From: Auanema rhodensis
Lineage: Eukaryota > Animalia > Nematoda
Length of the DNA stretch: 64,000 bases
Direction of reading: 5' to 3'
NCBI GenBank assembly: GCA_964057225.1
Contig: OZ059899.1
Coordinates: 5,394,001-5,458,000, forward strand
The position numbers were made by a program, and so were the translations under genes. Positions within the stretch are counted from its first letter, which is position 1; the number at the start of each line of letters is the position of its first letter. Shown here piece after piece: positions 5,901 through 30,403 of this stretch. Under the pieces are notes generated by a model, which was not told the DNA's origin, did not search any database, and worked only from the letters and a program-made list of their open reading frames with translations.

Positions 5901-7254
5901 TCAGATCATGCAAACCACCTAGGGTATAAGGCAAATGATTGTCTTAGCCTATTTCTCATTCAGTAAACCCTTCATCTTTGTCTGTATTCGAACACACACT
6001 ATGAAAATCCTTTTATTTCTTCAATACCTTCATCATCATCAATGATTCTTATCCTCTCTTTTCTTTTTTAATCTTTCATTCATTCATATTCACACCCACA
6101 CACACACACACACACATACATAACGCTCTTCTCGTAGTTTTTAAATTGTTTTATTCTTTAATTGAAATATTTATTAAATATTCTATATCATAATATTATC
6201 AGATAACTTTCTTTCTACTTTCTCTTCATCATCCTTTATTCATATTTTGATGTTGTCTCCAACATTTGTGTTTGTTTTCTCATCTTACTTTCCGTATTAG
6301 TCAAGACATTTAACTTTAAGTTTTTCCTTTATTTTCTTTTTATTTTATGATATCATCTTTATATAGATATAGAGGTATATCTTATAATCTTTATTAATAT
6401 AATTTCTAATTGTACTTTCTTTAAATATTCGATTCGTTCGTTTATATAGAAAGTTTAATATTAATTATTATAATTTAAATGTTTATTTTCTTTTATATTT
6501 CTTATTTGACCCCTAAAATAATCTTTTTTTTATATATTTATATTATATTTTACTTTAAATCTTCTTATGTATTATATAATCAGGATTATATATTTCTTAT
6601 ATGAATATTTTTCAAAACTATAAGGTCATTCAACAATTTTTTTTTCGTTTTCATATTCTTATTCTTCTGTTTTGTATATTAATTCTCTTTTGAAGATTTG
6701 TTTCCGTTTAATACCTTATCTTTCTATATATTGCACTTCAAAAATTCATTGGTCTTCCAACTGTTCACAGTTCCAGCTCTTTGTCATTTTTCTTTTCCCT
6801 CTTTATCTTCTTCTTTATTTCTATTTTCCTCTTCTTTTCTCTGCATCTCTCATTTTTCAATGAAATAAATTTAAAAAAACACCAAAAGACCTCCGAAAGT
6901 AAAGTTTTCTTTTCCTACCTACTCCTTGAAAATCGTCTTTGTTTTTATCATTTTGCAATACTAAAGTCATCACTATTCACCTCAGACTGCCTTTGTTAGG
7001 CTAGGTCAGTAGAAATGGTTGAAGGAACACTGTCCATCGTTGCTTGTCTTCTTGCAATACTGCCATAGGAAGTGGGCGACCCCAGCCTCACCTTCTTTTC
7101 ACTCAGACCTTTTCGTGTTATCTGCCACGCCCAAGGACGATGGACGTCCAACTTTCTTCGGTGTTTACTTCATTCTTTTCATTTCTTTTTAAAATTAATA
7201 AAAAAATGCAACAGCATGAATTTCAGTGAGAATTTCAAAGACAAAGAAAAACGT

Positions 7255-7340: not shown

Positions 7341-9831
7341 TAAAAAAAGAAAGAGATAGAGAAAGACTAAGCTTTACTATAATGTTTCATGTTACTTTCT
7401 TAGCTTAACATAACAATAGTTTTTGAATAATTTTTCAAAGAAAATCGTTGATTTTGCCATCTTCGAACATGAAATCTAAATTTCTAAATCACTGATTTCT
7501 TTCTGGACAATTGCTGTCGTCTCAAAACTTAAGTTTTTCTTTTGCTAACCGTTCAAAAATCGTCCATAACAATCGAAAAATCATTGTCGGTCTTTTAGTT
7601 TTGTCCGACTGTCGTCTGCCAGTCCGATTGTCGGATAGTTGTGTTGCCACTCTTGGACGGTTGTCGATTAAACTTGTTTCTGTTTCTCTTGGTAATTATG
7701 GTTGGGCATTCCCATACTTTTAGTGTTGTAAATTATTATCTTCATCATCATCATAATCATTATAAAATTATAATTAGATGACAACTGTTATCATGTAGAC
7801 AGTATATTCGGAGTATTCTTATAAAATGTTTCACATCTTCTTATTCATAAATTTGTTCAAATTCTAATTTTTCTATAGTTTTATATGATAAGATGTTGCC
7901 CACATATAATCAATCGCTCTCTGTATCTACTAATCACAGTTCGAATTTTGGACGACAACTTCTGATGATGAACACGTTTGAGCTGACGATGAACGGAACG
8001 CTTCAGATGAGAGGCGATTTCGGCGGTCTAGAACTTGGTCCAAAAGTTATGATCATCTGATGTGAGATCGATGAAAGAAGAACTTGTTTTCCTTATATGT
8101 CATCACCCAGTTAGCTCTGCTTGTCACACGAATCTCCAGCTTCGCCTCTTTCTCTCTCTCTTTTTCCTCTCTTTAATTCTTTTCCCCTCTACGACTCTCT
8201 CTTTTTATATTTTCTGTCAATATCTCTATTCTAGTCTATCTGCTATCAAAACTGTTCTACAAGCCCTCAAGCTATATTCCTCGTTTTTATGTTTCCCCGA
8301 GGCTGTGTGTCTTGAACATGTGTATTCTCACTCTCTATACAACACATATAGTCTCAAAATTTTAACTAGAAAATCAGAAAAAAAAATTGTTTGTATTCCA
8401 ATATTCTATATCATGAACCTATGTATTATTATCTTTGTCATCATTATCATCCATTCATCGAATACATCTCTTTTCAATTCTTTAGGTCCTTTCTTTAGAT
8501 TGAAAAGCCATATCTGAAATCAGTTTATCACCTTGTTCACAACGGCTAGTTCTTACATTTGAAGTACATGTATTAGCTTTTGCAAATCATCTGATGCCTT
8601 TAATCCTATTACAAAAAAACTTTTCTTTATCGATTTTCAGCGTTTAACATCTGAAAAAGTCGATGATAATCTCAGGAATATAAAAAAAACGGAAATGCCC
8701 AATTAAGGACATTAGTTTGCAAAAGACTAAAGGAGAATGAACAAGGCCTAGCACCTACGTCGTCTTCTATCCCGCCCTCTCTACATGCGCCTCTCAGATC
8801 ATCAACTTCAATGTTCATGATGTCGTTTTAGATATCTTCGTTGTTCGATGTCGACGTCGTCTTTGTACGATGTTGTTTCGATGTTGACAGTGACATTGCC
8901 GACGACATGATGTCGTCGTGGGTGCTGCGCTTCAGAAGATGAAAATTCAGCAGCAGCGTTAACGTCGACAACGCATCTCTGAAAGCCAAAAGGTCATCTG
9001 GGGCGTGGTTGGGACATCAACCACACAGCAGCAAGTTGTATTCCTGTCCTTTTCTCTCTTCCTCTCCCTCTCTCTTTTTCTCTCTTTTTCAGTTCAGGAA
9101 CTCCTCCCTCTTTCCCTGTCTCCCTCTTCCCTTCTTCAACCACAACCCGTAACCCATTCACAGTTCCAATAGAACGTACTCTTTTCAACTTTTCAATGTC
9201 TCCCACCCCCTCTTTCTCTCTTCTATCTCTATCTAATACTAACGACCCATTTGTTCATCTTTTTTTTTCATTTTTCATCATTAAAAATTTGGAATATACG
9301 CCATAAAACTTCTTGATAAGCTTTACCACTCTATCCGGGCCATCGTTGTCAAGTTAGGCTTCGTCGCCTATCAGTTCATCGTCTTAGAAGTATCTTATGA
9401 AGATTGCTAATTCTCCTATTTCATTTAATCTGTCAATATAATTTTTATTTTCATCAACTAAATAGATTGTTTTTCTATTAATTTAAAAAAAAAAAGATTT
9501 ATTTCATCTCAATTAACCCGGCAACAAGTTATAATTCTTACACATTCACATAGGGAGATCAATCCAAGTTGCTGCTTAAACAATACTGAATGTATTTTTA
9601 TTATTTTTTATTCTTTACGAACAGTTTTTTACTACATTTTGGAAAAACAAGAAAAGTTTTAAAATTTGCGTCATCTCCTAACCTCGTCTTCAGTTTTTAT
9701 TTTATTTTTTCAATAATTTGCTTTTTGATGTCTTCGTCCATTTTGTCGTATTTTCTTCCTCTTCCACTTCGATATGTTCAACCACTAATCGCAAGTTTGT
9801 TGATTTCAGAATCATCTCTCAGCCGGTCTGG

Positions 9832-12012
9832 ATGATTAACAACACCGGCAGCTCATTCGAATCGACAGTTCAGTCGTCGTCGAGTTCATCGACAACAACA
9901 TTTTCAGTGGAAAATGTTGTGCATATTCCTAATAAGCCACGACTATCCATTGATGCCACTGCCCGAGCCACCAATACTATTAGGCTGTCCCCCGGCTTCT
10001 TAGAAACAGGTTCGAAATACAAACTAAATTTTTATTTTTAATAAATTAACATATTTATATAAATATCTCTATATTTAACTTTACAATAATAATGTTATAT
10101 ACTATATGGCATAAATTAAATTTATTCTTTACTTAATTTGCACTTAAGCCAAGTTACTAAATTCAGTGGGAGTAAATTTCACGTGAATATATTGTGTAAA
10201 AGTTCACATTGAACTCATTAAAGTTTAAAAAATAACATTTGAAATACGAAAAATGTTGTTTTTAAGGTTAATATTCAAATATCTATAAAATAACTTTTTT
10301 TTTCTGATATGGTTGATTTTCTGTAGGATTACGGTAGCCTACCGTAACCCATTCATAAATACAATATTCAATTGTTTTATTACCGTTGACAACCTAATAT
10401 CATCATCAACATCATGCTAATAGCTTTTCAAAAATATTCTTCTTTTTTTTCTTTTTTTAATTTCTTTTTTGTTGACAAAAACGTTATTATTCTATCATTT
10501 GTCAAATCAAATCAATGTTTCAGTTGCTTCTGGAAGTAAAGATGACGAAATTTCCAGACGAATACATGAGGCTACTAGACGTTATAATCAGTTTGGAGCT
10601 CAGTTTTTTGAACGGTTTGATAAATCATAATTTTAATCAATTAAAATCATATTTATAGGTTTCGGGAAGAATTGAATGGATCATCAGCAACATATGACCG
10701 ATTGAGAAGTAACTCATTGAGACGACGGCTAAGTAAGGTAAGCATCATATATCATTTATCGAAATTACTGCGAATGGGAGTAATAGGTGTGGGCGGGCAA
10801 TAGAGTGGCATTCCACGATGAATGTTACAGACGTTCGCTGATTATCTGTACTTTCGTCTCATCCTACTCCTACCTGATAATATTGCTTCCCCCCAATATG
10901 ATCAATCAACTGCCGTTCGCTGCCGTAACATCTTTAGCAAAAAAAGGTTTTCTATTCGTTCTGAAATCGTTTCGGCACCCTTAAAATCATTAAATCTGGT
11001 AGGGAACGAGCCTATGAACTCCGAGGGTTCTGCCTTATGGCTGACTGGTTGTCAGCATAGCGGAAGAGCCACACCCTGTTGGGTGGAGTAGACGACGATC
11101 TTCTGGTCAACGTCGTCAAGTATACGGTAGTTGATCGGAGTGAGCGAAGATGAGATGCCATAATGCAGACATCGTCTTTATCAGAATGAAGAGGAACAGG
11201 ACAATGACGACAAGGCATCAGACAGAGGATGTTCTCCAGAGTGATCATTCACGGCAACGACTACGAGGCATCATCATTTGTCATTAGCATCGATGCTAAT
11301 CAACGTGATAGTTGCGTGTAGATCAATTCAATTCATGAGATTCATGTTTTTTTATCTTGTAGCTGATAGAGGGAGGATGAGACAGACAGAGAAAGAAAGA
11401 AAGAGAAATATAAGAGTGAGAAGTACGAGAGAGAAAGTGGAAATCTGAATCACGTCGTTACTAGCTACGTAGGTCTATGTATCGATGATTCTAGAAAATT
11501 CTAGAGTTCGACCAAAGGTATTTAGATAAGCAAAGTATAAAAGAAACATCTTAATGAAGGATTGATTAAACACCATATCGAGAAGCATTTGAAAAAATCA
11601 TGGATGGCGAACATATACGTTTGATCAATTTACACAACCTATATTTCTCAAATTTTTGTTCTATAAATAGGAACTGGTATCTTCTCATTTTATCTCTCTA
11701 TCTCTCGCTCTCCCTCTATATCTCTCTTTCCTCTATTTTCTCCTTATCCTTTCCATCCCCTCTCTCTATCAATCATATCTCGTTCTCTATTCATCAGAAA
11801 GCTCTTTATTTTTGCATGAACAACATCACAAATCGTTAACTTCATGGAATGAGTTGAGATGAAAATGTCTGTATGGATGCGGTAGACGCCTTCTATGTTC
11901 TTTTCGTTTTAACTCCACCCCCAATGGTATTTCTCTTTCTCTATTTCTTTCCGAATATCGCAACTTTACTCTATCTTTCTTTATAAGAAACCCATGATTC
12001 TATTGAACAAAT

Positions 12013-12074
<62 letters not shown>

Positions 12075-14370
12075 ACACGTGTTTGGCTGCTGATTGATAT
12101 ACTAAACATCGAATATAGTTGATCAAACAATAGAAAAAGTGATAGTATTTATCACGAGTTTTATATACATTCTATTTAATTCTTAAAATAAAGAAAAAAT
12201 GAACAAAGAACAGAGGTAAAAAGAAAACTAAAATTTAAAAAAATTTCTAAACTATTCTAAAAATAGGAAAAAAAGATAAAATATATTCGAATTTATATAA
12301 TATTATTTTATAATTAAAAGAATTAATCTAAATTATTTTAAAATATATCAAAGATTATTGATGAAATTAAAAGAAAAACTCTTTGTTGATGACGATTGTA
12401 ATGAACAAAGATCTTCTAAAGGAGTCATCTCTGTCTTCTTCCAAAGACACATACCAAGTATGTACACACCTCTTTCCGCTTTCAAACATTTTTTTTTCAT
12501 CACATCGTGAAAGGTTTAAATATAATATAAAAATTATTAATAAATATAATTATATTAATAACTTTTAAGATTAAATAATTATTTTATTTCAGATGGATAG
12601 TGCTGATGATTCAGGGCGTGCTACAACATCATCTGATACATCGTCCATATCTGATCTACTGATAGAAGATGAGCCTACTGGTGGTAAGCTTATAACTCAT
12701 CAACTTTTTAAACTTATTAGCTTATGTTTCTAGCATTTTCACCATATCGTTCTCGCATGTCTGCCTTTCCATCATCCCAATCTCTTTTTGATCCTCATGA
12801 GTTTTCTACAATGTCATCACGTCTAGAGCAGATTCAAAAAGAATTTTTCGAATATCCGCACAGTATGGAATAAATTCTTTTTTTTTGTGTTTAAACTAAT
12901 ATTCTTGTATTTCAGAAACTTTCTCTTCTATCTCTGGCTTTCAAACACCTACTACTGCCCTGGGGGCAGCATTTCAAGATCTCAATATGAAAAGTAAATT
13001 TATTTTCATCATATATTTCCATAATTATTTATTATCGTTAATCTATTACTGTATAAATTATCTTTCATCTCCAGGTGCCTTTGCTCCTGTATCCAGCAAG
13101 ATTCGTCCAAACCCTTTACGAGTATCAGAGAACGTTCCTATAGTAACACCAACAACATCTAACAACGCCCCAACAATATCGAGAAGCAATACAGGATACC
13201 GTATCTCTGATCTTCTTCAGGTTCAATTTTTTTTTCAATTTTTTTCATCTTTCTCTATATTTTAGGATGAGCCAGGCTTCCGTGCTTCCAGCTCCATGAC
13301 ACCTCTAAATTCAAATGTAGGAAATTCTAAAGTTCATCGAGTTCCAATAAAGTTGGTTTCAACTGAAAATTCAAGTTTGTAAAATGTTTGAAAACCTTAT
13401 AACTTTTAAAATTTAAGATTGTGAAAGTCGGTCTACTGAAAGCCGTTTCAGTAGTTTACGTGAAGAACATGTAGATCATGATATGGATGTTCCAACATCA
13501 CCTATAGCAAAGCATGCTCGACGTAAGTATTTATCTATATAAACTATATGTATAAATATATTTTTATAGGATCATCAGCTTTTCCTTTAACAATTAATAT
13601 TGAAACTCAAAGTACAACATCTGATTTACCAAGTTCTATATCGTCATCAGTAAATAGCTTTGTTTACCAACCAAATTCATTTAATCAGGAAGTTCTGAAG
13701 AAGCAACTTGATGACTTAACTGTATAATATATAATTTATAATATTATATTAATAATTATATTTCTAATAGGCTGCATCATGCTTATCAGTTATGCCTGAT
13801 ACTAATGGCATTGTTGATCCAGAAAAAGTCCGAGAACAAGTAAAATATAGAAATTTGAAATGATACTAATCTCTTAACTTATTCAGATTAATGCTGTTCG
13901 TAATCAGATGGCTCTTTTTGAGGAAATGATTGCTAATGCTAAAACAGAACTCAATATTGAAAGATCAGAAGCTGATAGTCAAGATTCTGCTCATGTTGAT
14001 GATATGTGTGAACCATCACCATCATCATCTCATACAGACTCTGAATCATCATCACGTGATCGACGTCTTCATCATTGTACACATCCTCAATGTGGAAAGA
14101 TGTATACAAAGAGTAGTCACCTTAAAGCCCATTTTCGAACACACACAGGTTTATAATTATTTTGTCATTTATCTTAATCATTATCATCTTATAGGTGAAA
14201 AGCCATATCATTGCTCATGGCCAGGATGTGATTGGCGATTTGCTCGATCCGATGAGCTAACACGCCATTACCGTAAACATACTGGAGATCGACCTTTCAA
14301 ATGTCCAAACTGTGCTCGAGCATTCTCACGATCGGATCATTTGAGTCTCCATATGAAGCGACATTTCTAG
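9832..14370 (+). CDS. klf-1: Kruppel-like factor (three C-terminal C2H2 zinc fingers), klf-1-like; multi-exon
   Basis: C-terminus [26 protein letters not shown]|[58 protein letters not shown] is the KLF finger triplet and, from recall, closest to nematode KLF-1. The first exons join in frame through GT-AG introns: 9832-10009, 10524-10614, 10659-10737, 12593-12683; further short exons follow to the TAG at 14368-14370. The 5' exons are less certain than the finger exons. Confidence 0.9.
12016..12070. repeat. (AG)n microsatellite in klf-1 intron
   Basis: Direct reading. Confidence 0.95.
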
Positions 14371-17007
14371 ATCAATTAGAATTCAATAATATCTGATACA
14401 CAATCAGATATTGAGAATTATTATCCCATGATTACAGTTATTCATCAGATTCATCACCAGAATTGAAAACTCATATATACGTGTCATGTTGTCTTTCTAC
14501 CGTAATCCCACACTCCTCATCTCCTTTATTAGAAAATGCCACAATCAACATTTCGGTGAAATATCAACTATACTCAAGTATTATGACATCATTGTTTATT
14601 TGTTTGTTTACAATGCTGCCTTTGTTTTCTGAGTTACGTTGTTTCCAGCATTATAATACGTGTCATATTATTTGAATTTCCTTGAATTAATGCTCTTTAG
14701 CTGAAGTTCAGTTTTCTATGTTTATTTTCTGTTTAACTATACATAAATTCTAATGTAATATATCTGGAATATACCTAAGCTATTCAAATCGGGTTTTCTC
14801 ACTGCCACACCAGTGATCTGAAATTTTTTTTTTTGCTTTTCGAAACTCTTGCCAAACTTGAGAAATCGTTTGAATTCTTTCTTTTTTTTTGTTATAAGCG
14901 CATATGAGATTTACCAGGCCTAGGCTCTCAGATTTAAATGGTTATTCCAGCTATATCAATTCAAAATTCTTTTATTCTTATGTATTTATTTTTAAAAAAA
15001 CGAGACGTACTACAGTGGTCATATCTATTTACAGGGTCATTAAGCGGTTTTTAACTTCTTGTTGTATCACTTAACTCCCTCATATCTCACCCTATATCCC
15101 CCTCCCCCTTTCTCTCTATCTCTTTGTATCCGGAAGAAATTATTTTCGCTTTTAGGATATAACAAACTCAGATAGAACGATTCAGCAGACATGTAATTCT
15201 AGTCACATAGTATACTTGTGACGTCTATACACATGTTTCAATTATTAAAAGATTATATATTGAATATAGTTAATAAATTAGAGACATATATTGTCTTTAC
15301 TATATACATATATAATAAAATCTTCATTGTCATCGGGTTAATATGTTTAAAATTAAAAAATAAATATTTTATTTTTATAAATATTGTATTATTATATTAT
15401 ATATACAAAGAAATTTAAATATATTTTATTTTATTTTATATTTTCTATTTAAAAATTAAAATAATTAAAATATTTTTCATATTCATATTCAAACAACAAC
15501 AAAAAATTTGAAATTTGTTTCTTTTTGTGTTCAGTTTTAGATGAACGGTTGTTCATTATGTTTCAACATGTGAAAATGAACAAATAAAGTTTTGAAAACA
15601 AAGAAAAACAGAAAAAAAAGACAAAAAACTGTAATGTAACAGATAGTTTATACACATTCCAAAATATACAAAAGTTTGTTGAAAATTTGAAAAAAAAAAA
15701 ACAAAAACAATATGTTTCATATGATTTTTCATCTACTAAACAACAATATACCATCTGTATAATATATATTGACTTCTGATCTTGAATATATTATAATACA
15801 ACATATATAACTTTCTTTAACTATACTACTCTAACTATACTTAGTTTATTTTTAAAAAAAGTTTTATTAACTATATGATTTATAAATATATATTATGTAC
15901 ATATAAATATAAGTAATAGTTAATCAAAATCGGAAATACGAAAAGGTGAAAAGACGACGAAAAAAAAACTTTTTTTTGTGAAAAAAGTTGATAGAAATCA
16001 GCATCTTTCCTTATACTTCTTTCATTTTTTTAAATCTGCTTGTTACGCATTTATGTTTTTGTTCGTCAACGATTCCCATTGGCGCCTTCGTCTGTCCGTT
16101 CCAAGGTCGTCACTTCAGTCTCAACCAGTCGATTCTCAACCTCGTGCCGTCGGTTTCTTCTTCAGAAAAATCTTTCAATTTTTTTTCTTTTAAATAACCT
16201 TATAGTACCCATACAAAAACTATTTTTTGTATATTTATCAATATATTTATATATTTATATAATATAAAGAATTATATTAAATACTTCAATACTATTCATA
16301 TCATCATCATCATCATCATCTTCTACACATTTCATTCTCATACTATTTCTATTTTTTTATTTCTTTTTCTTATTTCCCTCTTTCTCTTTCTTTCTTTCTC
16401 ATTCTCTCTCTCTCTCTCTCTCTAACCCCTCTACCTCTTCTTTTTTTATTTTTTTACCTCTTCTATTCTCTATTTTCTACATGAATCTTTTTTTAATTCT
16501 GAGTTTCGTAATGTCCTTGTATCGTAAAAGTGCATTTACCTTAATCATTTCGTTTTTGAAGATTATTCAATTGACTTTCCTCATTTTTTTCTTCTTTCTT
16601 CGACATTTTTTTAACGAAAACCTTCTAACATTCTTGACAATTACATATACGTATGTCAATGTATTTTATATATAAAACCTTTTATTTCTTTATAATTTAA
16701 TTAATTTTATATATTCTTTTAATGAAATAAACACTATTTCTTTGCCAATAACTCTTCTTACAAAACTTTTTGAATTATTGAAATCCAGTGTCCGTCTGTC
16801 CTCCCCATACTCTTCACCAATATTGGATAGTTGTCTATTCGATCTCAAGGACTTTCACTATATATGAATAACTTTACGCATTTTTGTCAGATGTTTTTCG
16901 GTTTTTCTCTTCAAATTCAACTTTTTCTCTGTTGCAGGTTCAGATATAGTCATATACACCTGTTTGCTCCAGTATATTTCACGTGAATATCACATCCACT
17001 TGAAGAC

Positions 17008-19257
17008 ATGACAACTGCTACGGTAACATACCATGAGTTACCTAATTGGGAATCAGGCACCCAACCATTACCTCGTCTCGACACACATCAGATGACTTCA
17101 TCAACATCTGTACATTCACCATACCATCCGAATATTTATCCAACTTCTGCTCAATATAATTCTGGTTAGTAAGCACTGATCAGAAAAAAAGTAAACCATT
17201 TTTGCAGAAGCAGATGATGATAAGTGGCAAGTATATCGTAGTGCACGAACTCCTACAACTTCAGCTGCAAGCACCTACACCAAATCTCATCAAGTAAACA
17301 TAGTTAAATATATATTATAGTTAGTGCCAGAAAAAAGAAAGAAACGACTTTGTTTCTTATTTCTCACATCATCTACTGGTTTTCTTTTTCTCTTTTTTTT
17401 AGACTATTAACTGCTTTTGAAGGTCGTTTCGAATTTGATACATTAAACATGCCTAAACATATATTTATAAAATATATTATTTTTTTTAAAAACAAACATT
17501 TAAAAAAATAAAAAAACAAATATTTAATTTTTCATTTAGATGCCTATCAAGCGTGTAACGAAAAGTCGTAGTAGACCATTTACAGTGTCTTGTGAGGAAT
17601 TATGTCTTGTTTGTGGTGATAAAGCTTCAGGATATCATTATAATGCTTTAACATGTGAAGGATGTAAAGGTATATTGATATTCAATATAGTTATATTCTA
17701 ACTTCTATAGGTTTCTTTCGTCGTTCTATAACTAGAAAAGCTACCTATTATTGTAAATTTGGTCAAAATTGTGAAATTGATATGTATATGAGAAGAAAAT
17801 GTCAGCATTGTCGACTTCAAAAATGTTCCAAAATTGGTATGAGAGCTGAACGTAAGTTTTAATCTTTTATAAATAAATTATTTGAAATAATAATTTATAT
17901 ATATCTATCTATATGTAGTTGTTATACCTGAAGAACAATGTCGAATAAAACGAGAAGCCAAACTTCGACAACGAAATACTAATGCTTGCAATAGCACAAC
18001 ATCAAAATCAGAAGAAGGAGTTGTTGATACATCAGAAACACCGAATGTATATTTTATTTTGTTTTTTGAATTTTTAAATTTAAAAATTTATAAATATAAA
18101 TAGTTAATATTACTAATTTAGATTGTTATAAATCAAATGCCTATTGAAACTCAAGAATTAATATCACGTTTATCATCAATATCAAAAGAATTTTTGATGC
18201 CTTCTGATGAAGCAATGACATCTTTATCGGCTAGTTCCATTTTTATATTTATTCTTTATATTTATATAATTAATATAAATATAATAATACTAATTGGCAT
18301 TTTTTAGATGCATTGTTCGTCAACTCAAGTATCGTTGTTTCAACATTTGGCTGAATTAACGATACTGGAAGCTCAGTTAGCACATGAGTTCATACGTCAT
18401 CTTCCAGGATTTTTACGTTTAGACGAAGAAGATCGTAAAACAATTCAAAAGGTACTAACATATAACTTATAAGTATATATAGTTATATTTGAATTTGATT
18501 GACATTTCAGTCAAGTAAATCGGATTTGTTCCTCTTACGTGCCGTTCAACGTTACGATCCCAGTTCCGATCAAGTTGTCTATGGAAACGATAATCACAAA
18601 TATCGGTTCGGTTTCATCTATCTGGATTTTATTTTTAAAAAAATGAAAAATATTCTTAACTTTTCTTATTTCAGCTTATCAGAAACCGATTACTCAAGGG
18701 CAGGCCTTCAAAAATCTGTTAGTATTTTCAATTTTATCCGTTCATTAGCTAAATTATGTCCGGACACAACAGAACTTGCATTATTACAAGCTATAGTTAT
18801 CTTTTCAGGTTTGTTTTTCAAACTTATCTTATGTTATTTCAAAAATAATTACAAACTTTTGTTTTAAGAACGTGATGTATTCAAGAAGAAATCTCAAGTT
18901 GATGAAATTCAAGAAATATATACTTTAGCTCTTCAACAATATATTGAAACTAATCGACCTATTGGACAAAAAACATTATATGCTAAGTATATTGTTAAAT
19001 TAGCTGATTTAAAAAAAATTAATACAGTAAGTTAGTTATAATGAAGAATAAATTATATTAAAGAAATCCTTCTATATATATATTTCTTTGAAAAACTTTA
19101 AAAAACTTATTTTTAGAGCACGAATACAACATCAGGAAGCACGCCTACAACCCCAACATCGCTACATTCGCCAAATTTCGGTCCATGTCCAACTGATATT
19201 TATCGAAGTGATTGGAGTGAACATCACAGTGGATCAAGTCGGACAAGTACTCCATAA
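17008..19257 (+). CDS. EcR: Ecdysone receptor orthologue (NR1H/EcR nuclear hormone receptor), 11 coding exons
   Basis: [90 protein letters not shown] is EcR-diagnostic. The LBD has [30 protein letters not shown] and [11 protein letters not shown]. Exons: 17008-17164, 17208-17293, 17540-17669, 17711-17851, 17919-18046, 18122-18229, 18308-18451, 18511-18605, 18675-18808, 18869-19026, 19117-19257. Confidence 0.92.
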
Positions 19258-20319
19258 TATTATATTATATAATTAATATAATTATATATTTATATTATTA
19301 TAATTATCAATATCATCATCATCATTCAAAGCTGTAACTGTTGATACCTTATTATCAACAGAAATATGATAGTGAAACTACACATCATCGTCGTCATTAT
19401 GAAAGTTTCCAAAGATATTCTGAAATCGAAGAAAATGAGATTTTCTAAGTGAAAATGACGAAAGAAAGAAGAAATAGAATATATTTATAATAAAAATTAA
19501 TATTTTTTCTGTATTTTTATTTATAAAATATAGTATATTATCATATAATTATATATTAATTTAAAATTATTAGATTTAAGATAATTTTAAAAAAGAAATA
19601 TATACACCATAATAGGTAGAAGTGAAGATACATCACTATATCAAGCCTATGTCTTATGCATATAGATTGTAATGAATTCCTCATAATAACCAACTATCAT
19701 GAACAAAGAAACAGCTTTTCTCAGACAATAACTATTAAAAATTTTAAAAAATAACGACGAATATCCTGAGACAATGATGAAGCATCTTCTAACATCAGCA
19801 TCAACACTGACAACACAGCTAGTGGCCTTGACGACTACTTCCCCATCTCAATGACAAACTGTCATCAGATTGCCATTGTTACTTTAAAAGCAAAGAAAGG
19901 AATTTTTAACGAAAATTCAAAAAACTTCCTGAAACACGTCAAATATGAAAGATCAGTAGCAACGTTGGCTTCCCACCATCATAATATTACAAAGGTCATT
20001 AGCTTTCAGAGAACATATTAACTGATACAAAAACTTTCAATGAATCACTTTTTGGCAATTTGAATCAAAAAGATTGAATGGGTCGTATGATAAAGAAGGT
20101 TATAAGAGATAGAATAATATGTGTAGAGAAAGAGAGTGAGAGAGAGAGAGAGAGAACGCTCAGTTAACGTGAAAGACAACAAAATTTTAGAAAATTGATG
20201 AATGACTACTGATTTATTAACTCATCAATTCTGAAAAAAAAAAGTTCAAATGATTCTTGACTTCTAAACCAATCATCTTTCAGATCGGTATGGGTTGGCT
20301 ATTACAACAATCATGCCCA

Positions 20320-20325
20320 TATAAA
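20320..20325 (+). promoter_or_regulatory. Candidate TATA box of the secreted peptide gene
   Basis: CATATAAAGG about 95 nt upstream of the ATG; TGATAA (GATA) sites also lie upstream. Confidence 0.45.
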
Positions 20326-20417
20326 GGTAGATCAACCATCGTTTCACAAAATATAATCATTTTTCAACTTATTTCTTATATGATAATTGAAACTTTATTC
20401 AATAATTTCAGAAAATC

Positions 20418-20813
20418 ATGAGAACTATTATCGCAGTTCTTCTTCTTGTTGCTGCTGTATCTGCTCAATTTGGTAATAATTTCAATACAAAAATATTTTT
20501 ATTAAGATGTGCTTTAGGGATGAACAGAGGACCAAGTTATCACGGACAAACTGGATTCAACAGTGGCCCCAACTACCATCAACAGTCCAACTTCAACCGT
20601 GGACCAACTAACTACCATCAACAGACTAGCTTTAACCGTGGACCAACTGGATTCAACCAACAGGGAAGCTTCAACAGAGGACCAACTGGATTCAACCAAC
20701 AAGGAAGCTTCAACCATGGCCCAAGTAACTACGGCAACCATGGTCCAGTAGGATATCACCCAGCCACCGGAGCTCACCCAGCTGTTGGACTCGTTGGACA
20801 TTTACTCGGATAA
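20418..20813 (+). CDS. Small secreted Gly/Asn/Gln-rich repeat peptide, caenacin/NLP-29-like antimicrobial peptide candidate
   Basis: Signal peptide MRTIIAVLLLVAAVSA followed by QFG. One 45-nt intron (20473-20517). Repeated FNRGPxxFxQQxS units, ending HPAVGLVGHLLG*. TTTCAG acceptor immediately before AAAATCATG. Confidence 0.85.
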   Translation: MRTIIAVLLLVAAVSAQFGNNFNTKIFLLRCALGMNRGPSYHGQTGFNSGPNYHQQSNFNRGPTNYHQQTSFNRGPTGFNQQGSFNRGPTGFNQQGSFNHGPSNYGNHGPVGYHPATGAHPAVGLVGHLLG

Positions 20814-21263
20814 TCTACCTTACTAATGATCTTTTTAAACTTGTTTCTTTTGTTATTGTTATATACATACGTATGTATATATAATTGTTTTACAAATATT
20901 TCATAAAAATTAAATTAAATATCAAAAAAACTTATTCTTCTCTTGATACAAAAACCCAAATTCTTATAAAGTTGACAGAAATTAAATCAATATATGTATG
21001 TCTATCTACATATTGTATGTAATTATTGTCAATTTAAAAAAATTATATAATAATTCATATAAAATATAATTTATTCTTCAGTTACTACTGCAAAATAAAT
21101 ATAAGCGAAATATTCAAGAAGTATCTTTTTAATTATGAAGAAATCTGCTTTGCAGATCAAATTTTAAAAACTCAATTAATAATTAGAGTTAAAATATAAG
21201 GATATATTATATCCTATATCATTCGCCTGAAATATTCTATACTATACATATAATAATAATAAT

Positions 21264-22469
21264 TCAAAGTTTAAATTTACAGTTAAATGATTCTTTAAAT
21301 GATTGAATTATATTTTGGGTTATTCGTCTGATTGGAGATAAAGTAAAGCAAATACTTAAAGGACAAACTATATGTGAAAATACTATTGATACAACACTTA
21401 AATCAGCAATATCTATAAAATATATTATTTTGAATTAAAAATTATTTTAAAAATAATAAAATTACTTTTTACATGTATACGAAATATATTAACAAATGCC
21501 ATTATAACATAAGGTATAAGAAGAAGTGCCGTATGTGATATACCCTATTCATATAATTTTTTATTTTTAAATATAAAATATATAATTTACCATAACTAAA
21601 GTAGTTGTCGTAATTCTACGTTGTGTACTTATAACTTTAACAGATGTTGAAGTTTTTAGTTTATAAACTAAAAATAAAGATGCTACAAATCCAAAAATAT
21701 AATATCCAACAACAATATAAACAGCACAATAGAATAATATTTTAGTTTTAGTCATAGAAAGATCATATGTCATTACTTTATAATTACCAAAATCAGATAA
21801 AGTCATATTTAAAGCCTAAAATTATAATTTTTAAACTTATTATAGTTTAATATAATTAATTAATAATAAATAAATAAAAGAAAACAAACGTTTAAACATT
21901 TAGAAAGTATTTGATCATCTGGTGCTAACAAATAGTATCCAGCTACTATTACTGATAAAGTAAAAATACAATGAGTAAAATATGAATAATATATTAAATT
22001 TTTATAAATAGGTGATAAGCATACTGATATTTGTATATATCTATTTATTAAAATATAAGCAAGTACAGTTAATTCTCCTTAAAAATATTTTTCATTTAGT
22101 TTATAAAATGTTTATTTATTTTATAATAAACAAATTACCTGCAAGTAAAGTTACTTGTATAAATATATATTCACGAGCTGGTAATCCGAATATCGTTGAT
22201 ATTGGGCCAACTGATGAAAATCCTGAACATGGATAGAGTAGGACAGGCCTACCAAGTACTATGAATACACCTGAGAAGTATGATCTAAGATTTAAAAAAA
22301 ATATTATTATTATATAATATATAATTAAAACATACAGTAATATATAACTTAAAAATAGATATTGACTTGTTCTTGTCATTGATTCATTTTTAATAACACA
22401 AAATGAGGTAAATATGGGTACAATAACACCAAAAACAACAATAACCATTGAAACAATTTCAGGTCTCAT
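21264..22469 (-). CDS. Serpentine 7TM chemoreceptor (Str superfamily, srh/sri/str-like); multi-exon
   Basis: Hydrophobic exons in series: MRPEIVSMVIVVFGVIVPIFTSFCVIKNESMT..., VLGRPVLLYPCSGFSSVGP (typical PvllyP..g.ys.G segment), ...ISTQRRITTTTLVM, and terminal HIVCPLSICFTLSPIRRITQNIIQSFKESFNCKFKL*. A TTTTCAG acceptor lies upstream at ~22576. Confidence 0.8.
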
Positions 22470-25465
22470 AATAAGTTACTATAATTACTGATTTACTATA
22501 TATTGAACTTTTGGATGCTATGCACGTTTGCAAATATAAAAAAGTAGAACAGAATCCGTAATTCAAATAAGATATCTGAAAAAATATAAAATGATAAGAA
22601 ATTTTTGGAATATTCAGCTGTTAATTTTAAAAGTAATTAACAAAATATCAAGAGAATCGATAATAATTAATTCAAATAACTTTAATATGAAATAATATAT
22701 AAATCCATATGAATATATACATAAATATAATAAAATAAATATATAATTTAGATATATTGATATAAGGTTATGATCTTTATTTTAATTTTTTTTGTTTAAT
22801 ATCTGAAGTTTCCCTTTAAATATATTTCATGGATAGTACTTAGATGTCTCTTACTTGCCTTGGTAACAGGATCTATAGTTGAAACATTCATCTTCAGCCT
22901 TTCTATCTCTTTCGACCTCTACCTCTTTTCTAATCTCTCTATTTTACTCATTCATTCATTATCTTCATCTGCTCATTGGAAAAATGAGATAGATAGAGAA
23001 TGGAAAAGAATAAGTTGGTGAAGAAAATGTTAACGATAAAATGGCATATGGAGAAACAGTTGGCTAGATGAAGACGTAAAGCCTGAGCTTGTCCTCCGTT
23101 TGCTTCTTTTACCTTTTTCTCTTTTGTGTAATAAAGTGGAAAAAAGAGAAAAAAAGGAAAGGAAAGACGATGATACTGATGAGAATGACAGAATAGAAGA
23201 AAGAATGAACGATATTTTAATTGAAATGATAATTTGAAGCTTTTGACGTCATAAATTGGTCAACAGCTGCTTTTAAGAAAAAGTTCATCATGTAAGACAT
23301 ATGAATAAATGTAGTTTTTATATTACTTATGTACTATAAAATATTCAAAAAATGATAATAAAGAAAGAAGATAAAAGATTATTTAGTAACATATTTTCAT
23401 AATTTACATATATAATACGTAATAAATAATATTATTTTTGTTCTTTCATCTATGTGATGTCAAGAACATTTTTTTCTTTTTATAAGAACTTTTCATGCAT
23501 GAAATATTAAATACAAAAAATTATTTATAAAATAAAATAAAGAAGTGTTATAATTAGAAATATAAGTATAAACAAAAAATATAAATATTTATCATAATAA
23601 TTATATAATGTTTCTTAATTAATTATTAAAAAATATTATTTAAATATATTTTTTTAATATTAAAATTTTAAAAAAAAGTAAATATAAAATTATATTTCAT
23701 ATTCAATGTTAATTGAATCGTGAATAAAAATTTGAATGATACGTAATGATAATCTTTTGAAATAAAAAGAATTCAAATGAATAATCTTCTAGTAATCTTA
23801 GTGAATTCATTCAATATTTTCATGGCGGTACAATACACTTTTTGAAATTAATATTCAATATTTTATAATATTTGTATTTTCATCTATGCATTGGAAAAGA
23901 CAATTAATTGAACAAAAAAAATCAAAATAATCAAAACTGAGGTGGGGGGAGGGTTGGTCTGTTTCTGATAATATGTACAAATATTTATATTTTACATAAT
24001 AAATAAAGTTTTTTGAATCCAAGTTCTGAATTTCATGTGATCCCTCACGTTTCAAGCGTTTCCGAATACAAATCTTCTCATTACACCCCAATTGCGACAA
24101 AATGAAAGAAAAATGAGATGAAAAAGAGAATGAGGGAAAAGAAGAATAAGAGAGAAATTAGTTAAAAAGTTCCTGAAGTTTTCTCTCAATTTTATTTATT
24201 TCTTTCATCATTATCAGTCTTCAAATCATATATTCTTCAACATTTTTTTCAGCTTTATCTCTATATTCTCCACAAGATAATTCATCAAAATCGTCACCGT
24301 GTTCTCTTTTCTCTCAAATTTTATTTTAAATTTAATTCTCATTTATTTTGATTTTTACCCTTGTTGGTTCCTTTAATACTTCCTGGTTTAAATCAAGGTG
24401 ATGATAATTTTAAAAATTGATAATAAGAGAATACAAAGAGAAAGAAAAAGAGAGAGAGAGAGAGAGAGACAGACAGAGACAGAGAGAAAAAGAGAGAGAC
24501 CAAGAAAGAGAGAGGGAAAGAGAGAGAAAAAGAGAAATGTAGAAGGGAGGGGGAGGAATGTGAAAGTAGAGAAAGGACCGACATGCATATACACATGTAG
24601 AGGAAAGACTTTTGATGAATTAATATAAACCTAAAGTAAAAAGATTTTTCTAGCTCTAATTTATTATGAAAAGCTTCATTAAGCTGTGAATATTATTATT
24701 GAACGTTCATTGACTAATAATATTTATTATTTATTTGTAAAGAATAATGATTTATTAAAAAATAATATATTTAGTTATATCACATTGAGCTGAAAAGACA
24801 CGAATATATGTTTTTACAGGTAAAATTTTAATAAAAAGTGACATAATTGGTTAAGTAGTTAAGTGAGAAAATAAAGAGAATTAAGGAATATTGTAATAAT
24901 AATCAATTAAATGATTATGCAAATTATAAAAATATATATATTTCATAGAAATTAAGGAAATAATGGAATTTCTTTTGTCAATTTTTGCTTTTAAAAGCAA
25001 AAAATAAAGAAAATACACATGTATACATATGCACAGGATATATATAGAAAATAAAGTAAATCACCGACATGGTCAGAACAACGAGACGAGGCTTACAGAA
25101 AATATTTCTTTGTTAAAACAATGTTCAGTAAGAAAAATTAAAAAAAAACATAAAGCATTATAGCATAATGCTTATAATTCAAAACTTTGAAATAATAATG
25201 AAATTATCAATTTATAACAAAGTTATAATAATATAAACAAAGAATGAAATAATTCAAATCCTATACGAATTTTAAAGGCTTATGGCAGTAATATTTGAGA
25301 TAATAAGCAATTCAATTAAAGTTTTTCTACATTTCTTTTAGCAAATAAGCAATTTATTCTTATTCAAGCTTAAGAAATGTTTTGCAGAAAAGAAACAACT
25401 TTGAGAATTAAACTATAGAACTTAAAGCTTTCAATTTTTAGTATTTCAATCTACATGTTAATCAT

Positions 25466-26786
25466 TTAGATAGTAGATTCGTGGAAAGCCTGTGTATATT
25501 CCACTGGTGTTGATCGAACATATCCGGCTGGTCCCTTAAATAATAAAAACATTTTTAATTTAATTCTAATTAGTAATATTATTATATTATTCTTCATAAA
25601 ATAAAATTTATACAAACCTGAGTATAGATAACATCAGGTTGAACTTGCTGGATACGGTTGGCGTTTATGTAATCTTGACTAACTGGAGTTACAAGGGGTG
25701 GCTAAAGTAAAAACATTTTGATTAATACATATATTCTATATACTATATATGTATGATCATATACTATACTGAATTATCTTATAACATACCTGAGAATATT
25801 GAGGATTTGGACGATATGGATCAGGGTTGTAGGTTTGGTTCATGGACATTGGAGATGGTGCTACAACTGGTGATCGTGGATCAAATCTGAATTAACTATA
25901 TTACATCAATCCATATTCTACTTGACTTACTCAAAGTTTTGCGAATTTTGTTGCGAATTTTGTTGCTGAGGTGGTTGATACATTTGAGATGAAGCTGGTC
26001 TGTATGATGGAGCTTGAGCTGGCCATTGTCCAGAATTTCTACTACTGCCTGTGTAACGTTTTTTCTCTTTATCATCATCCCTCATCTGAAATAAAATTCA
26101 TATTTTGACGTCTTCATGTATATTTTGTTTCAGAATATGCCTTGATTTCGTTAAAAATTCAAATTTCGTGACATCGTCATTGCATCTGCTTAAGAGAGAT
26201 TGCAAAAGCATTTTGATTGCTCTTCGTCTTTATGATTTTCGTTTGTATTTCTTGATACATACAGAAGAATATGTATGTATGTAATATGAATTTCGCTTTA
26301 TTGGTTCATCTTCGGCTTTCTTTCTCTTGTTCTCTCTCATTCCCTACCTTATACTCTCTGTATCTATCTCTTATTTTTCTTCTTCTCTCCCGGAGGTCAA
26401 GAACAACTTAATATTTTCGAAGAAGCTTGAGCGCTGTTGATGTTTCATGAAGACTTCTCTCTTGGAAACTACATTCGAATAGAACACCAATATCCTACAT
26501 TCTCTTCTTTTTCCCTCAACTACCTTCATTAAGATATGCTCGAAGAGAGAAGTCAGAAAGATAGATAGAACATAAAGAGAAAGGAATGAAGAGAAAGGGG
26601 ATAAGCAAGATGAAAAAGTACAGTGAAGGGAGGAATGTTAAAGCTGCTACAATTGTCCTTTTACCACAATATGTTTGTCTTTTATGTGATGACGGATAAG
26701 ATGAAGATGAAGGAAAAGAACCATAGAATCATCCCTTTAACCCAAAGAACTGTTATTAGGGTTTAAATAGATGAGAAAGAGAGAAC

Positions 26787-26830
<44 letters not shown>

Positions 26831-28529
26831 TTAAATCTAACACCTGTTCCCATTTGCTTCTCGTATTCTTCCATTCTCTTTACGTACACATCTGTGTATG
26901 TTTCAGTTGCTCAGCTCATCTTACGTCATATTCTCTCATTCCTCTACTTTTACTCCCTGTGACACCTCTCTCTCTCTCTCTTTATCTTTCCCCCTTTCTC
27001 TTTTTCCCTCTCTTTCTCATTCTTTCTTTACATATGACCTAACTCGATCTGAGGAAACCGTTACCTCTCCCAACCTTATATCTCTTTACTCTCATCTGTT
27101 ATGCCTTCTGTCTAGCCTCAAGCGCATAACACATCGACGATCTCGCCCAAGGGTCACAGACGTGGACAAACAGAATCAGAAACTCTAATACAATCAAGCT
27201 ATATAGCAAGACTGAAATGTACAGATACAATGAATATAAAAGAATAATAATTATTTTTAAATATATAAAAATAATAAAAGAAATAAGAAATTCTAAATTA
27301 ATTTAATTTTTTCAATTATTTCTTATTTTTCATCTTTTTTTTTCTTATTCAAAAATAACTATTATATTAGAGATCATATGAACGTGCATTCTGATGATAT
27401 AGTTACAACTTCAAGTTTTACTAAAACTTGAATAACGCCTATTGGCAGAGTGATAGTTAAAAAATCAAAATTTGATCCACTTTCCCAGGCTCACACCAAA
27501 ATTTGCATTTTCCTCATGATATCGTCCTTCACATCGTCTTTGATACTGTCCTACTTGAGGTTTCCGGTTTTTGTCGTTTTGATTGCAGGTTGAAAGCGTG
27601 AGAAACAGCTTGAAAATTGCCAAACATAGCCATTTATCTATAGAAATGGTGCTCTCAAATAGACATTTTGTATTCAGTGTTTATATGGAATAGCACAATA
27701 CAACAAATGAAAGAAGATGATTGTAAAATGATTCTCTTCTTCAATAATTCTTTAACATCTTTTCATGTTATTTCTCGAATCCTCTCTGTCTCTCTCTCTC
27801 TCTCTCTTCATAACTAAATTATTTAACTTTTACTGAATATGTTTATATAAATCATATAATAACATATCTTATATATTTTTCCTCAAGTTATATTGTTGAA
27901 ATGATCTCTTTCATCATTTAATTTTTTTTTCCATAATCACATTCAAAACGAAAAGCTTTTACAAAGGATTGAAATCCAAATATTTGATAATGAGAATTAA
28001 CTATATGTATAGAATATAAGAAGAATGATAAGAAAATAGAATTATATATATATTAATCTATATGTATAGTTATAATGATAAACTAAGTAAAATGATAAAA
28101 CTAACCGATTTGGTGCAGACATATAAACCTCCAAGAACTAAACCTAACAACAATAATGCTCCAACCAAAATGGCAAAAATTACTGCCACCTGGAATAAAA
28201 ATACTTATATTTCAAACTTTTAAATATAATAAATGTTTTTCTTTTACTATTATTATCTTCAGATTATCAATTATAAATTAAACAATTGTTGATTGGAAAA
28301 AAATGTCTAAAAACGATGACTAAAATTTACAAATCAGTTTTTCTGCTGTTGGTAAACTTCCAGAGAAAAACAAAATAGTTATTATATTAATTCAAAGATA
28401 ATATTTAATATAAATGTATAGCAATTAGATAAAAAATAAAAATGGATGTGATGTTATACAGTAAGATAACAATTGAAATAATGAAAAATTTTATTTTACC
28501 TGGTAATTATAGTGATCTGTATAACTCAT
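25466..28529 (-). CDS. Single-pass membrane protein (~170 aa) with a 10-aa ectodomain and a Pro/Gln/Tyr-rich cytoplasmic tail
   Basis: Six exons join in frame: MSYTDHYNYQ (28529-28500) | VAVIFAILVGALLLLGLVLGGLYVCTKS (~28190-28107) | MRDDDKEKKRY...QQQNSQQNSQNFE | FDPRSPVVAPSP...PQYSQ | PPLVTPVSQDY...VIYTQ | GPAGYVRSTPVEYTQAFHESTI*. All introns are GT-AG; a TTGCAG acceptor lies 31 nt before the ATG. Confidence 0.8.
26790..26828. repeat. (AG)n microsatellite in intron of the membrane-protein gene
   Basis: Direct reading. Confidence 0.9.
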
Positions 28530-30403
28530 AGTTAGTTAAGAATTCGTCTTCTGTCGTACTCTGCAAGGAAATTTTCTTGAATGGAAAGGTAAATAGACAA
28601 GAGACAAGCCTCGGGGCTGGCTCTAGCAGGCCCGAAGGTACGCGAAGATAAGTACCAAAGGAAGAGATGGTGCAAGAGAGGAATAGAATAAGAATAATAA
28701 AGAGACGAAAGAAATTAAAGAAAAACAAGGAAATACAGTGAAAGAGAGGGAGAGAGAGAAAGAGGGAAAGAAAGGGGAGGAAAATGAAGGGAAAGAAGAA
28801 GATGATGTTAAAGCAGAGTATCTTCTGCTACTGTATATAAAATCTTCAAATAAAGAACCGAAAAATTAATGTTCGAAAGCTTTGAACAAGGTCGGCAAGT
28901 CAAAACTCAAATGCTGAAGATATTCTTGATAAGAGGGTGAGATGAAAGATAGTATAGCATGAGAAACGATGAAATGGAAAGAGGTAAAGAGAGAGAAGCA
29001 GAGAATATTATGGGAAAATTTTGATAAAAATAGAAAATAATGGTTCGTATGACAATAGTGATGAGACGAATTAAAAATTTGTCGGTAAACCTGTGAGGCA
29101 ATGCTTTATCACGCTCAGTGCAATTGAGCTCGAATCAAGAATGTTGAACATACTCACACATATCATGAAACATACAATATAATGAAAATCAGAAAAAGAA
29201 TTAAAGAAATGTTTTTAAAGAATAAAATAGTACAATATAAGGATATGATGAAAACATTTTGATTATATTAAAAATAAGGAAAATTAGTTGTTGTTTAAAA
29301 AATAATTGCCATATTAGATATATGTAATAGAACTATTTTTCTTATAATATTTTTTATATTTTAGGTTATTTCATAGATGTTAAATTCAAGTTTTAATGAT
29401 TAGTTGGATTTAAAACGAAAAAAATAAAAAATAAAATATTCAGTATAACTGTGAAAGACAGAAATTTTGTGAGCAACTGAGAGTTTGGTGTGTTGGAAAG
29501 GATATGTAATCCTAAATCAATTGTAGAATCTTGAAGAAGATTCGTAATACAGTAACAAAGAAAGTATGTGAATGTGTATTCTGACTGTCTGTTTTCATGA
29601 TCAACGATAGAAATTCAAGAGAATGTTATGAAGGTGATGATGAGAAAAAGTGAGAATTATGAGAGAAGAAGAGAAAAATAAAAATAAGAGTGCATGTAAG
29701 TTGAAGAGATAACAGAGAATTGTAAAACAAACAGAACACTGGTTCCAGCATTCTTTCAAATATTCAAAATTTTTGTAAAAAAAAAGAGGAAATAACGGTT
29801 AGTTGACAGGCTTTTTCTGCGATTCTTAAAGTTTGTTTCATGTTACGTGTCTCACAATTGGAATCAAAAATGAAAAAAAAAACAGAAAACGATTAAAGAA
29901 TAGAAACTACAATGACCATGCTAATGCTGACAATCTGTTTTGAGCGAAAAACGATATAGAGATGAAGCTGAATTGAACTATACGACATAATACAAACGAT
30001 TTGATGGAATAATCCGATGTATAACTACGATTAGATAATATTTTCATGTAATAGTTAGATAGTTGGTTTTGCTTGTCTGAATCAGAGGTTGATGCTTATA
30101 AGCATAAAATTAAAGAAGTGAATGTGAATATCGTTATATTCTACATATAGTTAGTTACTATATGTATATACATTATATGTATCTTTCGATTATATAATGA
30201 GAGAATGGAAATTAGAAGACTGTGATAGTATACTCACAAGGTTTGTGAGTCCAAATAGCCAGCCGTCTGACGACACAGAGTCGCTGCCCCTCTGTAGAAA
30301 TGGAATGCACGTTGGTCAATAGAATATGAGAGAGTATTGACGATGTAGAGGATGAAAGGAGTCAAAATAAAATGACAAAGAGAGAGAGGAAGATAAAAGA
30401 AAG

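Follow-up and report, generated by a model that had tools for sequence, protein, structure and literature searches.

A constrained ecdysone receptor gene predicted to lack helix 12 in the nematode Auanema rhodensis

Introduction

Among the described receptors that resemble the gene reported here, an ecdysone receptor (EcR) gene of the nematode Auanema rhodensis, the filarial ones are known to depart from the canonical C-terminus. The ligand-binding domain (LBD) of Brugia EcR lacks the conserved residues of helix 12, which corresponds to activation function 2 (AF-2), and no helical propensity is predicted there, yet it remains able to pass on an ecdysteroid signal in cells (Tzertzinis et al. 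2010, PMC2834746). In Rhabditina, ecr is present except in Caenorhabditis, usp has been lost in Strongylida and other members, and species lacking usp have been proposed as intermediates on the way to losing ecr (Yamakawa et al. 2026, PMC13195034). Citing earlier work, that paper reports that Haemonchus EcR does not pair with louse USP (Graham et al. 2010) and that 20-hydroxyecdysone (20E) has no effect on the Haemonchus L3-L4 moult. In PMC13195034 we came across no reference to helix 12, to AF-2 or to truncation, its supplements in text form do not name Auanema, and we found no paper on Auanema EcR in the literature. The gene bears on how nematodes passed from moulting control by ecdysteroids and EcR-USP to the EcR-less Caenorhabditis.

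We analysed a 64,000-nucleotide stretch of the A. rhodensis genome (assembly GCA_964057225.1, contig OZ059899.1, positions 5,394,001 to 5,458,000 of the forward strand; hereafter "the window"), in which an EcR gene lies at 17008-19257 on the + strand. The evidence is probably best explained by an intact and constrained EcR orthologue that carries a disordered Ser/Thr/Pro-rich tail instead of helix 12, with a loss most likely independent of that in filariae. The gene would thereby add a well-conserved member to the nematode EcRs that have no conventional helix 12, its loss being probably a separate one. Since it is already published that nematode EcRs exist outside Caenorhabditis and that some of them have no helix 12, the gain is incremental. 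The interest lies in a receptor that appears remodelled rather than eroded in a free-living member of Rhabditina close to Strongylida: the DNA-binding domain (DBD) as well as the LBD core are kept and the activation helix is replaced.

Identity and phylogenetic position

An exon model was obtained by reading letters 16500-20500 of the window and testing splice phases. It comprises 11 exons with a coding length of 1422 nt (473 codons and a stop codon), from an ATG at 17008 to a TAA at 19255-19257. Database searches used single window exons or, as a proxy, the orthologue from Auanema sp. JU1783; the spliced window model was used in local alignments, dN/dS and the tree. The window protein itself has no entry in the protein collections searched.

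The Pfam domain zf-C4 was complete across exons 3 and 4, Hormone_recep gave weak matches in exons 7 and 9, and the DBD carries an EGCKG P-box and an EcR-type second finger. HMMER, run exhaustively with the exon of the second finger, retrieved the 461-residue JU1783 protein, with 100% identity over the exon; identity was 80-85% to the EcR DBDs of strongylids, Ascaris and Acrobeloides, whereas most other listed proteins reached 70-77%. JU1783 is the nearest relative, at 78% identity. Among the 120 best-ranked database relatives of the JU1783 orthologue, all but one, an FXR-like row at the bottom, were EcRs. They included those of Haemonchus, Ancylostoma, Nippostrongylus, Necator, Cylicocyclus, Ascaris, Plectus, Dracunculus, Toxocara, Steinernema, Trichuris, Trichinella and Brugia, with arthropod EcRs thereafter; EcRs of Dictyocaulus, Angiostrongylus, Oesophagostomum, Steinernema and Acrobeloides were also matched.

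Alternatively, the gene might be a different receptor of subfamily NR1, either LXR/FXR-like or from the nematode DAF-12/NHR-8/NHR-48 group. The exon 7 peptide (helices 3-4) ranked EcR best among PDB sequences, with LXR and FXR after it, and the exon 10 peptide (helices 9-10) matched VDR, PXR and EcR roughly equally, scoring slightly better with VDR and PXR when taken alone. The whole JU1783 LBD, however, matched seven EcR structure sequences with E values from 2.8e-34 to 4e-23, compared with 1.4e-19 for LXR and 1.9e-19 for VDR, which favours EcR by 15 orders of magnitude, and no DAF-12 structure was among its top 60 PDB sequence matches. The window protein also carries the EcR-specific DMYMRRKCQ motif and an EcR N-terminus. 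We consider the chance that the gene is another NR1 receptor negligible; a DAF-12/VDR-like identity, in particular, was rejected on the PDB ranking of the JU1783 LBD and on the tree.

The maximum likelihood tree (IQ-TREE, LG+C20+F+G4, 29 rows, with one FXR-like protein as the sole outgroup) recovered the nematode EcRs as a clade (99/98) that follows the order of the species. Within it the window gene paired with JU1783 (100/100), and the pair was sister to Strongylida (97/95) on a long stem branch (0.91). Regions of the window at ~9800-14400 and ~21300-29760 are syntenic with the flanks of EcR in JU1783 contig CALQYR020007468.1, the upstream neighbour (~9800-14400) being a C2H2 zinc-finger gene. 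No second nuclear receptor DBD was found within the 64-kb window, and a word-index search with helices 3-5, aimed at EcRs of other free-living Rhabditina, matched only strongylids. On the basis of the DBD, the database and PDB rankings, the tree and the synteny, the sequence identifies a single-copy EcR (NR1H1) orthologue of an Auanema-like rhabditid. The original prediction, made from the letters without database searches, had read the gene as a rhabditid EcR with an intact DBD and had called for a phylogeny; both the identification and the intact DBD are borne out.

The C-terminus

Exon 10 ends after LADLKKINT at a phase-0 donor (gtaagt), and reading through this donor allows two codons before a stop. 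Exon 11 follows a tttttag acceptor, has a GC content of 0.45 (intron 0.16, 3' flank 0.20), and is open for 46 codons, for which the chance is ~0.014 at the composition of the flank. The tail after helix 10/11 comprises 46 Ser/Thr/Pro-rich residues with no helix-12/AF-2 motif. Its fraction of Ser, Thr and Pro (0.59) is close to that of JU1783 (0.58), compared with 0.20-0.38 in strongylids, and the helix-11 stretch is polar and of low complexity in both Auanema proteins (INTSTNTTSG in the window, INHTVNSSS in JU1783).

The last intron of JU1783 interrupts the same codon in the same phase (LADLKKINH|gtaaac, phase 0), and its last exon of 102 nt is also Ser/Thr-rich and has no AF-2 motif (JU1783 exon lengths 133, 119, 271, 122, 108, 144, 95, 134, 158 and 102 nt). 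The EcR of Haemonchus contortus (UniRef D3X8I0, "isoform +9.1_B"), mapped to its own genome, has exons of 139, 80, 145, 141, 236, 141, 95, 137, 161 and 138 nt, a series in agreement with that of the window gene if window exons 5 and 6 (128+108 nt) are set against the 236-nt exon; its last intron is in phase 0 and lies within ~2 codons of the window's alignment position, and its last exon has 138 nt compared with 141 in the window. Because the phase and position of the intron and the length of the last exon agree, exon 11 corresponds in position to the last exon of a normal EcR gene and is not a stray open reading frame. When the peptides encoded by the last exons of the window gene, JU1783 and strongylids are aligned, the result is ambiguous and varies with the MAFFT mode. 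A D-x-Y...W-x-E pattern is common to the window and JU1783 tails and is a lead at most.

A conventional helix 12 further downstream was sought in ~3 kb. The FLxEIWD-type motif was absent from every forward frame at 19027-20420; helix 11-helix 12 profiles built from arthropod, strongylid and basal nematode EcRs gave no hit above 4 bits in the window at 18869-22500 or in the JU1783 locus at 7516-10700; and tblastn and blastn comparison of the window with the JU1783 locus found no conserved block 3' of the stop codon. Helix 12 therefore appears, from the sequence, to be absent from the window EcR.

Predicted structure

Folding was performed with AlphaFold2 on residues 200-461 of the JU1783 orthologue, as a proxy for the window protein, with an alignment of 47 sequences. 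The model had a mean predicted local distance difference test (pLDDT) of 85 and a predicted template modelling score of 0.80, with helices up to residue 236 and values below pLDDT 50 for residues 244-262; the helix-11 stretch continued helix 10 with dropping confidence. The six best PDB matches found by Foldseek were all EcR LBDs (target-normalised TM 0.81-0.83, root-mean-square deviation (rmsd) 1.7-2.4 Å). In VIA the model matched 4ozt_E with Z 28.1 and rmsd 2.1 Å over 217 residues, and the arthropod EcR LBDs overall with Z 26-28 and rmsd 2.1-2.4 Å. Coverage by the model ended at 4ozt_E 503, 2nxx_F 530, 2r40_D 514 and 1z5x_E 399, so that the fit to the EcR crystal structures ends ~15 residues short of the helix 12 at their C-terminus.

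A model of the Haemonchus LBD (pLDDT 86) contained an extra helix, PEKSLLMQMML, at segment residues 242-252 (pLDDT ~57), and its coverage extended to 4ozt 518, 2nxx 546, 2r40 529 and 1z5x 415, that is, through helix 12. The models thus predict a helix-12 equivalent in Haemonchus and none in Auanema. Through the orthologue, they also predict for the window EcR an LBD with the EcR fold, spanning helices 1 to 10/11, and a disordered tail in place of helix 12. The absence of helix 12/AF-2 claimed in the original prediction, and the structure prediction it had proposed as a check, are in agreement with these results.

Several points count against the absence of helix 12. The 19026^19117 junction and the stop codon are predicted from DNA letters alone, the JU1783 protein is itself a computational gene prediction, and the structural support comes from an orthologue that is 78% identical, not from the window protein. 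The C-terminus might then be modelled wrongly, with helix 12 supplied by another 3' exon, additional or alternative, and the Ser/Thr-rich exon being a minor isoform or false; the EcR genes of Haemonchus and Brugia do make several isoforms. This alternative is improbable. The last intron and exon agree with a cloned Haemonchus EcR as well as with the JU1783 model, exon 11 has a coding-like GC content and a frame unlikely to be open by chance, and the forward frames to 22500 and the JU1783 downstream region hold no peptide resembling helices 11 and 12. There is also no downstream block kept between the two species, and the next gene begins at 20418.

Selective constraint

Synonymous sites are saturated between the window and JU1783 (proportion of synonymous differences, pS, 0.53-0.87 overall and 0.63-0.87 for the DBD and LBD helices 3-10). 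Against this background the DBD is 100% identical (proportion of nonsynonymous differences, pN, 0.011) and LBD helices 3-10 are 86% identical (pN 0.09); the hinge (75%), the A/B domain (59%) and the tail (33%) are less so, and the conservation ends exactly at LADLKKIN. Comparison of the two sequences indicates strong purifying selection on the DBD and LBD and a tail that evolves fast with a constrained composition, a pattern of a functional receptor and not of a pseudogene. As identity in the DBD and LBD is high at saturated synonymous sites while that of the tail is 33%, the gene is judged to be constrained and not decaying, and it appears intact and functional.

The original prediction had tentatively placed the receptor on a path to EcR loss, an idea already in print for usp-lacking Rhabditina (PMC13195034), and the strong purifying selection argues against it. 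A decaying remnant, whether pseudogene or near-neutral, heading to loss as in the lineage to Caenorhabditis would be in line with that published hypothesis, with the long stem branch of the Auanema pair and with the degenerated tail. It is nevertheless contradicted by the identities given above, by a 473-codon frame that is open, by splice sites that are all usable and by the confident LBD core of the JU1783 model, and we regard it as very improbable.

Groove and pocket residues

The motifs quoted in the original prediction are all present in the window protein, among them EFIR and DRKTIQK in exon 7. These two had been taken as signs of a degraded coactivator groove, and this part does not stand. 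The changes EFxK to EFxR and DQIxLLK to DRxxxQK, and the replacement of the second helix-3 Thr by Glu (ILEAQ), occur in all sampled Rhabditina, including Haemonchus, hookworms and Mesorhabditis; ILEAQ, HEFxR and EDRxxxQK-SK are common to strongylids, Mesorhabditis, JU1783 and the window. Because they are common to all sampled Rhabditina EcRs, the groove and Thr-to-Glu changes are not local degradation, and the EFxR/DRxxxQK groove appears to be the norm of Rhabditina. The helix-3 Lys, a charge-clamp residue in arthropods, is kept in Plectus, Trichuris and Trichinella, lost in Spirurina, and Arg in all sampled Rhabditina, the window included.

The positions of the ecdysteroid pocket are as originally described: in the alignment the first helix-3 Thr, the helix-5 Arg and the Tyr of DYSRAG are kept, as in arthropod EcRs, and the next helix-3 Thr is Glu. 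These positions follow the residue numbering of the insect pocket; their conservation was read from the alignment. The arthropod LPPFLxEIWD motif is absent from every nematode EcR in the multiple alignment, and an AF-2 of this type therefore does not define the nematode EcR branch. Specific to the Auanema pair is the lack of both the strongylid helix-11 start (FCxEH...) and the D(V/I)KPEK-SLLxQMM helix.

Origin of the probable helix-12 loss

The EcRs of Brugia malayi and Dirofilaria immitis resemble the window gene in being EcR orthologues with the same N-terminus and a conserved DBD and LBD helices 3-10, as well as in lacking conserved helix-12 residues. Unlike the window protein, Brugia EcR has a recognisable helix-11 start (SEQSEII...) followed by a glutamine-rich helical segment, whereas the window protein has a short Ser/Thr/Pro-rich tail and no such segment. 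The two losses also lie on separate branches of the tree, one in Spirurina and the other in the Auanema lineage within Rhabditina.

The strongylid EcRs (H. contortus D3X8I0, Ancylostoma, Necator, Cylicocyclus and Dictyocaulus), which form the sister group, share with the window the signatures ILEAQ, HEFxR-LPGF and EDRxxxQK-SK and the exon structure, including the phase of the last intron. Unlike in the window and JU1783, their last exon encodes D(V/I)KPEK(S/A)(L/M)L(E/M)Q(M/I)M, a helix that AlphaFold places where helix 12 sits in the EcR and LXR crystal structures. Arthropod EcRs (Tribolium 2NXX, Heliothis 1R1K/2R40, Bovicola 4OZT) are ~75-85% identical to the window protein in the DBD. The window protein has neither their helix-11 sequence (GNQNSEMCFSLKL) nor their helix 12 (LPPFLxEIWD), and it has a three-residue beta-sheet insertion, as in all nematode EcRs.

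Helix 12 is present in arthropods and tardigrades, and strongylids carry a helix in the corresponding position; by parsimony, helix 12 was therefore most likely lost in the Auanema lineage on its own, in parallel to filarial worms. Weighing against this polarity, the strongylid helix is of low confidence (pLDDT ~57), and all profile scores of the strongylid KPEKSLLEQMM helix against arthropod helix 12 were negative. The choice between a loss here and a gain in strongylids rests on position and parsimony, because the strongylid helix is of low confidence and has no detectable homology. Sequence homology of that helix with arthropod helix 12 was rejected on the negative scores, leaving position and structure as the support.

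Ligand control and mode of regulation

Rev-erb (NR1D) also has an LBD without helix 12, and this absence leaves its corepressor-binding groove permanently open; Rev-erb, which binds haem, has retained a normal helix 11. The likeness is an analogy of mechanism only, not of membership, as sequence and tree place the window gene in NR1H/EcR and not in the Rev-erb subfamily. By its DBD sequence the window EcR would still bind EcR-type response elements. With no AF-2 lid to close over the pocket, the groove of helices 3-5 would be permanently open, and the receptor would act without AF-2 as a regulator that could be constitutive, recruit corepressors or depend on a partner. Phosphorylation of the TP/SP-rich tail may provide a further layer of regulation. 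We tentatively propose an AF-2-independent and largely ligand-independent regulation of the window EcR, a possibility that we hold slightly short of probable.

The original prediction had suggested a Rev-erb-like, ligand-independent or repressor-only EcR. The missing FLxEIWD motif does not by itself imply ligand independence, as the motif is missing in nematode EcRs generally and the Brugia LBD, without it, transduces an ecdysteroid signal (PMC2834746). That signalling counts against our proposal, and it gives a model for the alternative in which the window EcR is still controlled by ecdysteroids or another sterol through a route other than AF-2. The ligand would act by stabilising the dimer formed with a partner, as shown for Brugia EcR, and the loss of helix 12 would be of little consequence. 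The retained helix-3 Thr, helix-5 Arg and beta-turn Tyr and the constrained LBD core are in its favour. In insect EcR, however, helices 11 and 12 contribute pocket residues, and in the window helix 11 is polar and of low complexity and helix 12 is gone. The reports on Haemonchus cited within PMC13195034, according to which an insect USP is no partner for its EcR and the L3-L4 moult is unaffected by 20E, and the reported loss of usp in Strongylida and other Rhabditina, also argue against it. Retained ligand control is in our view unlikely.

Going beyond the proposed ligand-independent regulation, the free-living Auanema lineage may use an AF-2-less, probably USP-independent EcR as a constitutive or partner-gated repressor under purifying selection. 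We consider this more specific scenario rather unlikely. If true, such a repressor would be a living intermediate between ecdysteroid-dependent and ecdysteroid-independent control of moulting. As Auanema is genetically tractable, the function of a naturally helix-12-less EcR could be tested there directly.

Exon structure and neighbouring sequence

The coordinates of the exon model are listed in Table 1. The introns are 41-246 nt long, with a GC content of 0.08-0.33, and all are GT-AG except one. This exception is a GC-AG intron at 18229/18230; the end of exon 6 was placed at 18229 with a GC donor because only that end keeps the reading frame. JU1783 has a GT donor (TTATCG|gt) at the same codon, and the GC donor is supported by the identical length and TTATCG end of the orthologous exon. 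The 41-nt intron at 17669/17711 divides the DBD between the two zinc fingers, and the Haemonchus gene is interrupted by an intron at that position too. In JU1783 the DBD is a single 271-nt exon (6357-6627 of the JU1783 locus). Therefore, the presence of the intron in the window and Haemonchus and its absence in JU1783 indicate an intron loss in JU1783. Four small sequencing runs of one study contain 0.38 of the words, which is compatible with, without proving, spliced mRNA.

Table 1 Predicted features of the EcR gene in the window (all positions are those of the window)
Feature	Position	Strand	Length (nt)	Evidence
Exon 1, A/B domain with start codon	17008-17164	+	157	N-terminus as in Brugia (primer sequence, PMC2834746), Ascaris, Haemonchus and Auanema EcRs
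Exon 2, A/B domain	17208-17293	+	86	Frame-consistent GT-AG splice; homologous JU1783 exon
Exon 3, first zinc finger of DBD (CLVCGD...CEGCKG)	17540-17669	+	130	Pfam zf-C4, E 2.8e-10
Exon 4, second zinc finger (FFRRS...)	17711-17851	+	141	Pfam zf-C4, E 2.1e-14; JU1783 identity 100%
Exon 5	17919-18046	+	128	Reading frame; alignment with JU1783 orthologue
Exon 6, helix 1 region, GC donor TCG|gctagt	18122-18229	+	108	Reading frame; JU1783 exon also 108 nt
Exon 7, helices 3-4 (EFIR, DRKTIQK)	18308-18451	+	144	Best PDB sequence matches EcR LBDs, then LXR, FXR
Exon 8, helix 5 and first beta strand	18511-18605	+	95	Reading frame; alignment
Exon 9, beta turn (DYSRAG) to helix 8	18675-18808	+	134	Weak Pfam Hormone_recep match; alignment
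Exon 10, helices 9-10, end LADLKKINT, phase-0 donor ACA|gtaagt	18869-19026	+	158	VDR, PXR, EcR helix 9-10 matches
Exon 11, 46-codon Ser/Thr/Pro-rich tail and TAA	19117-19257	+	141	Positional match to strongylid last exon
Candidate poly(A) signal AATAAA, sole one between stop codon and next gene	19489-19494	+		Motif

Three non-coding blocks, located 0.1-1 kb upstream of the EcR start at 16033-16171, 16504-16537 and 16831-16906, are 85% (139 nt), 88% and 78% identical to JU1783, and they are conserved although the synonymous sites of the coding sequence are saturated. The upstream conserved block had no Rfam match and no stable fold. The blocks are probably a 5' untranslated exon or promoter or enhancer elements.

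For the next gene downstream (20418-20813, +), no evident counterpart was found right after EcR in JU1783. This gene starts with a signal peptide followed by tandem FNRGPTGFNQQGS-like repeats and, on these features, is predicted to encode a secreted Gly/Asn/Gln-rich protein.

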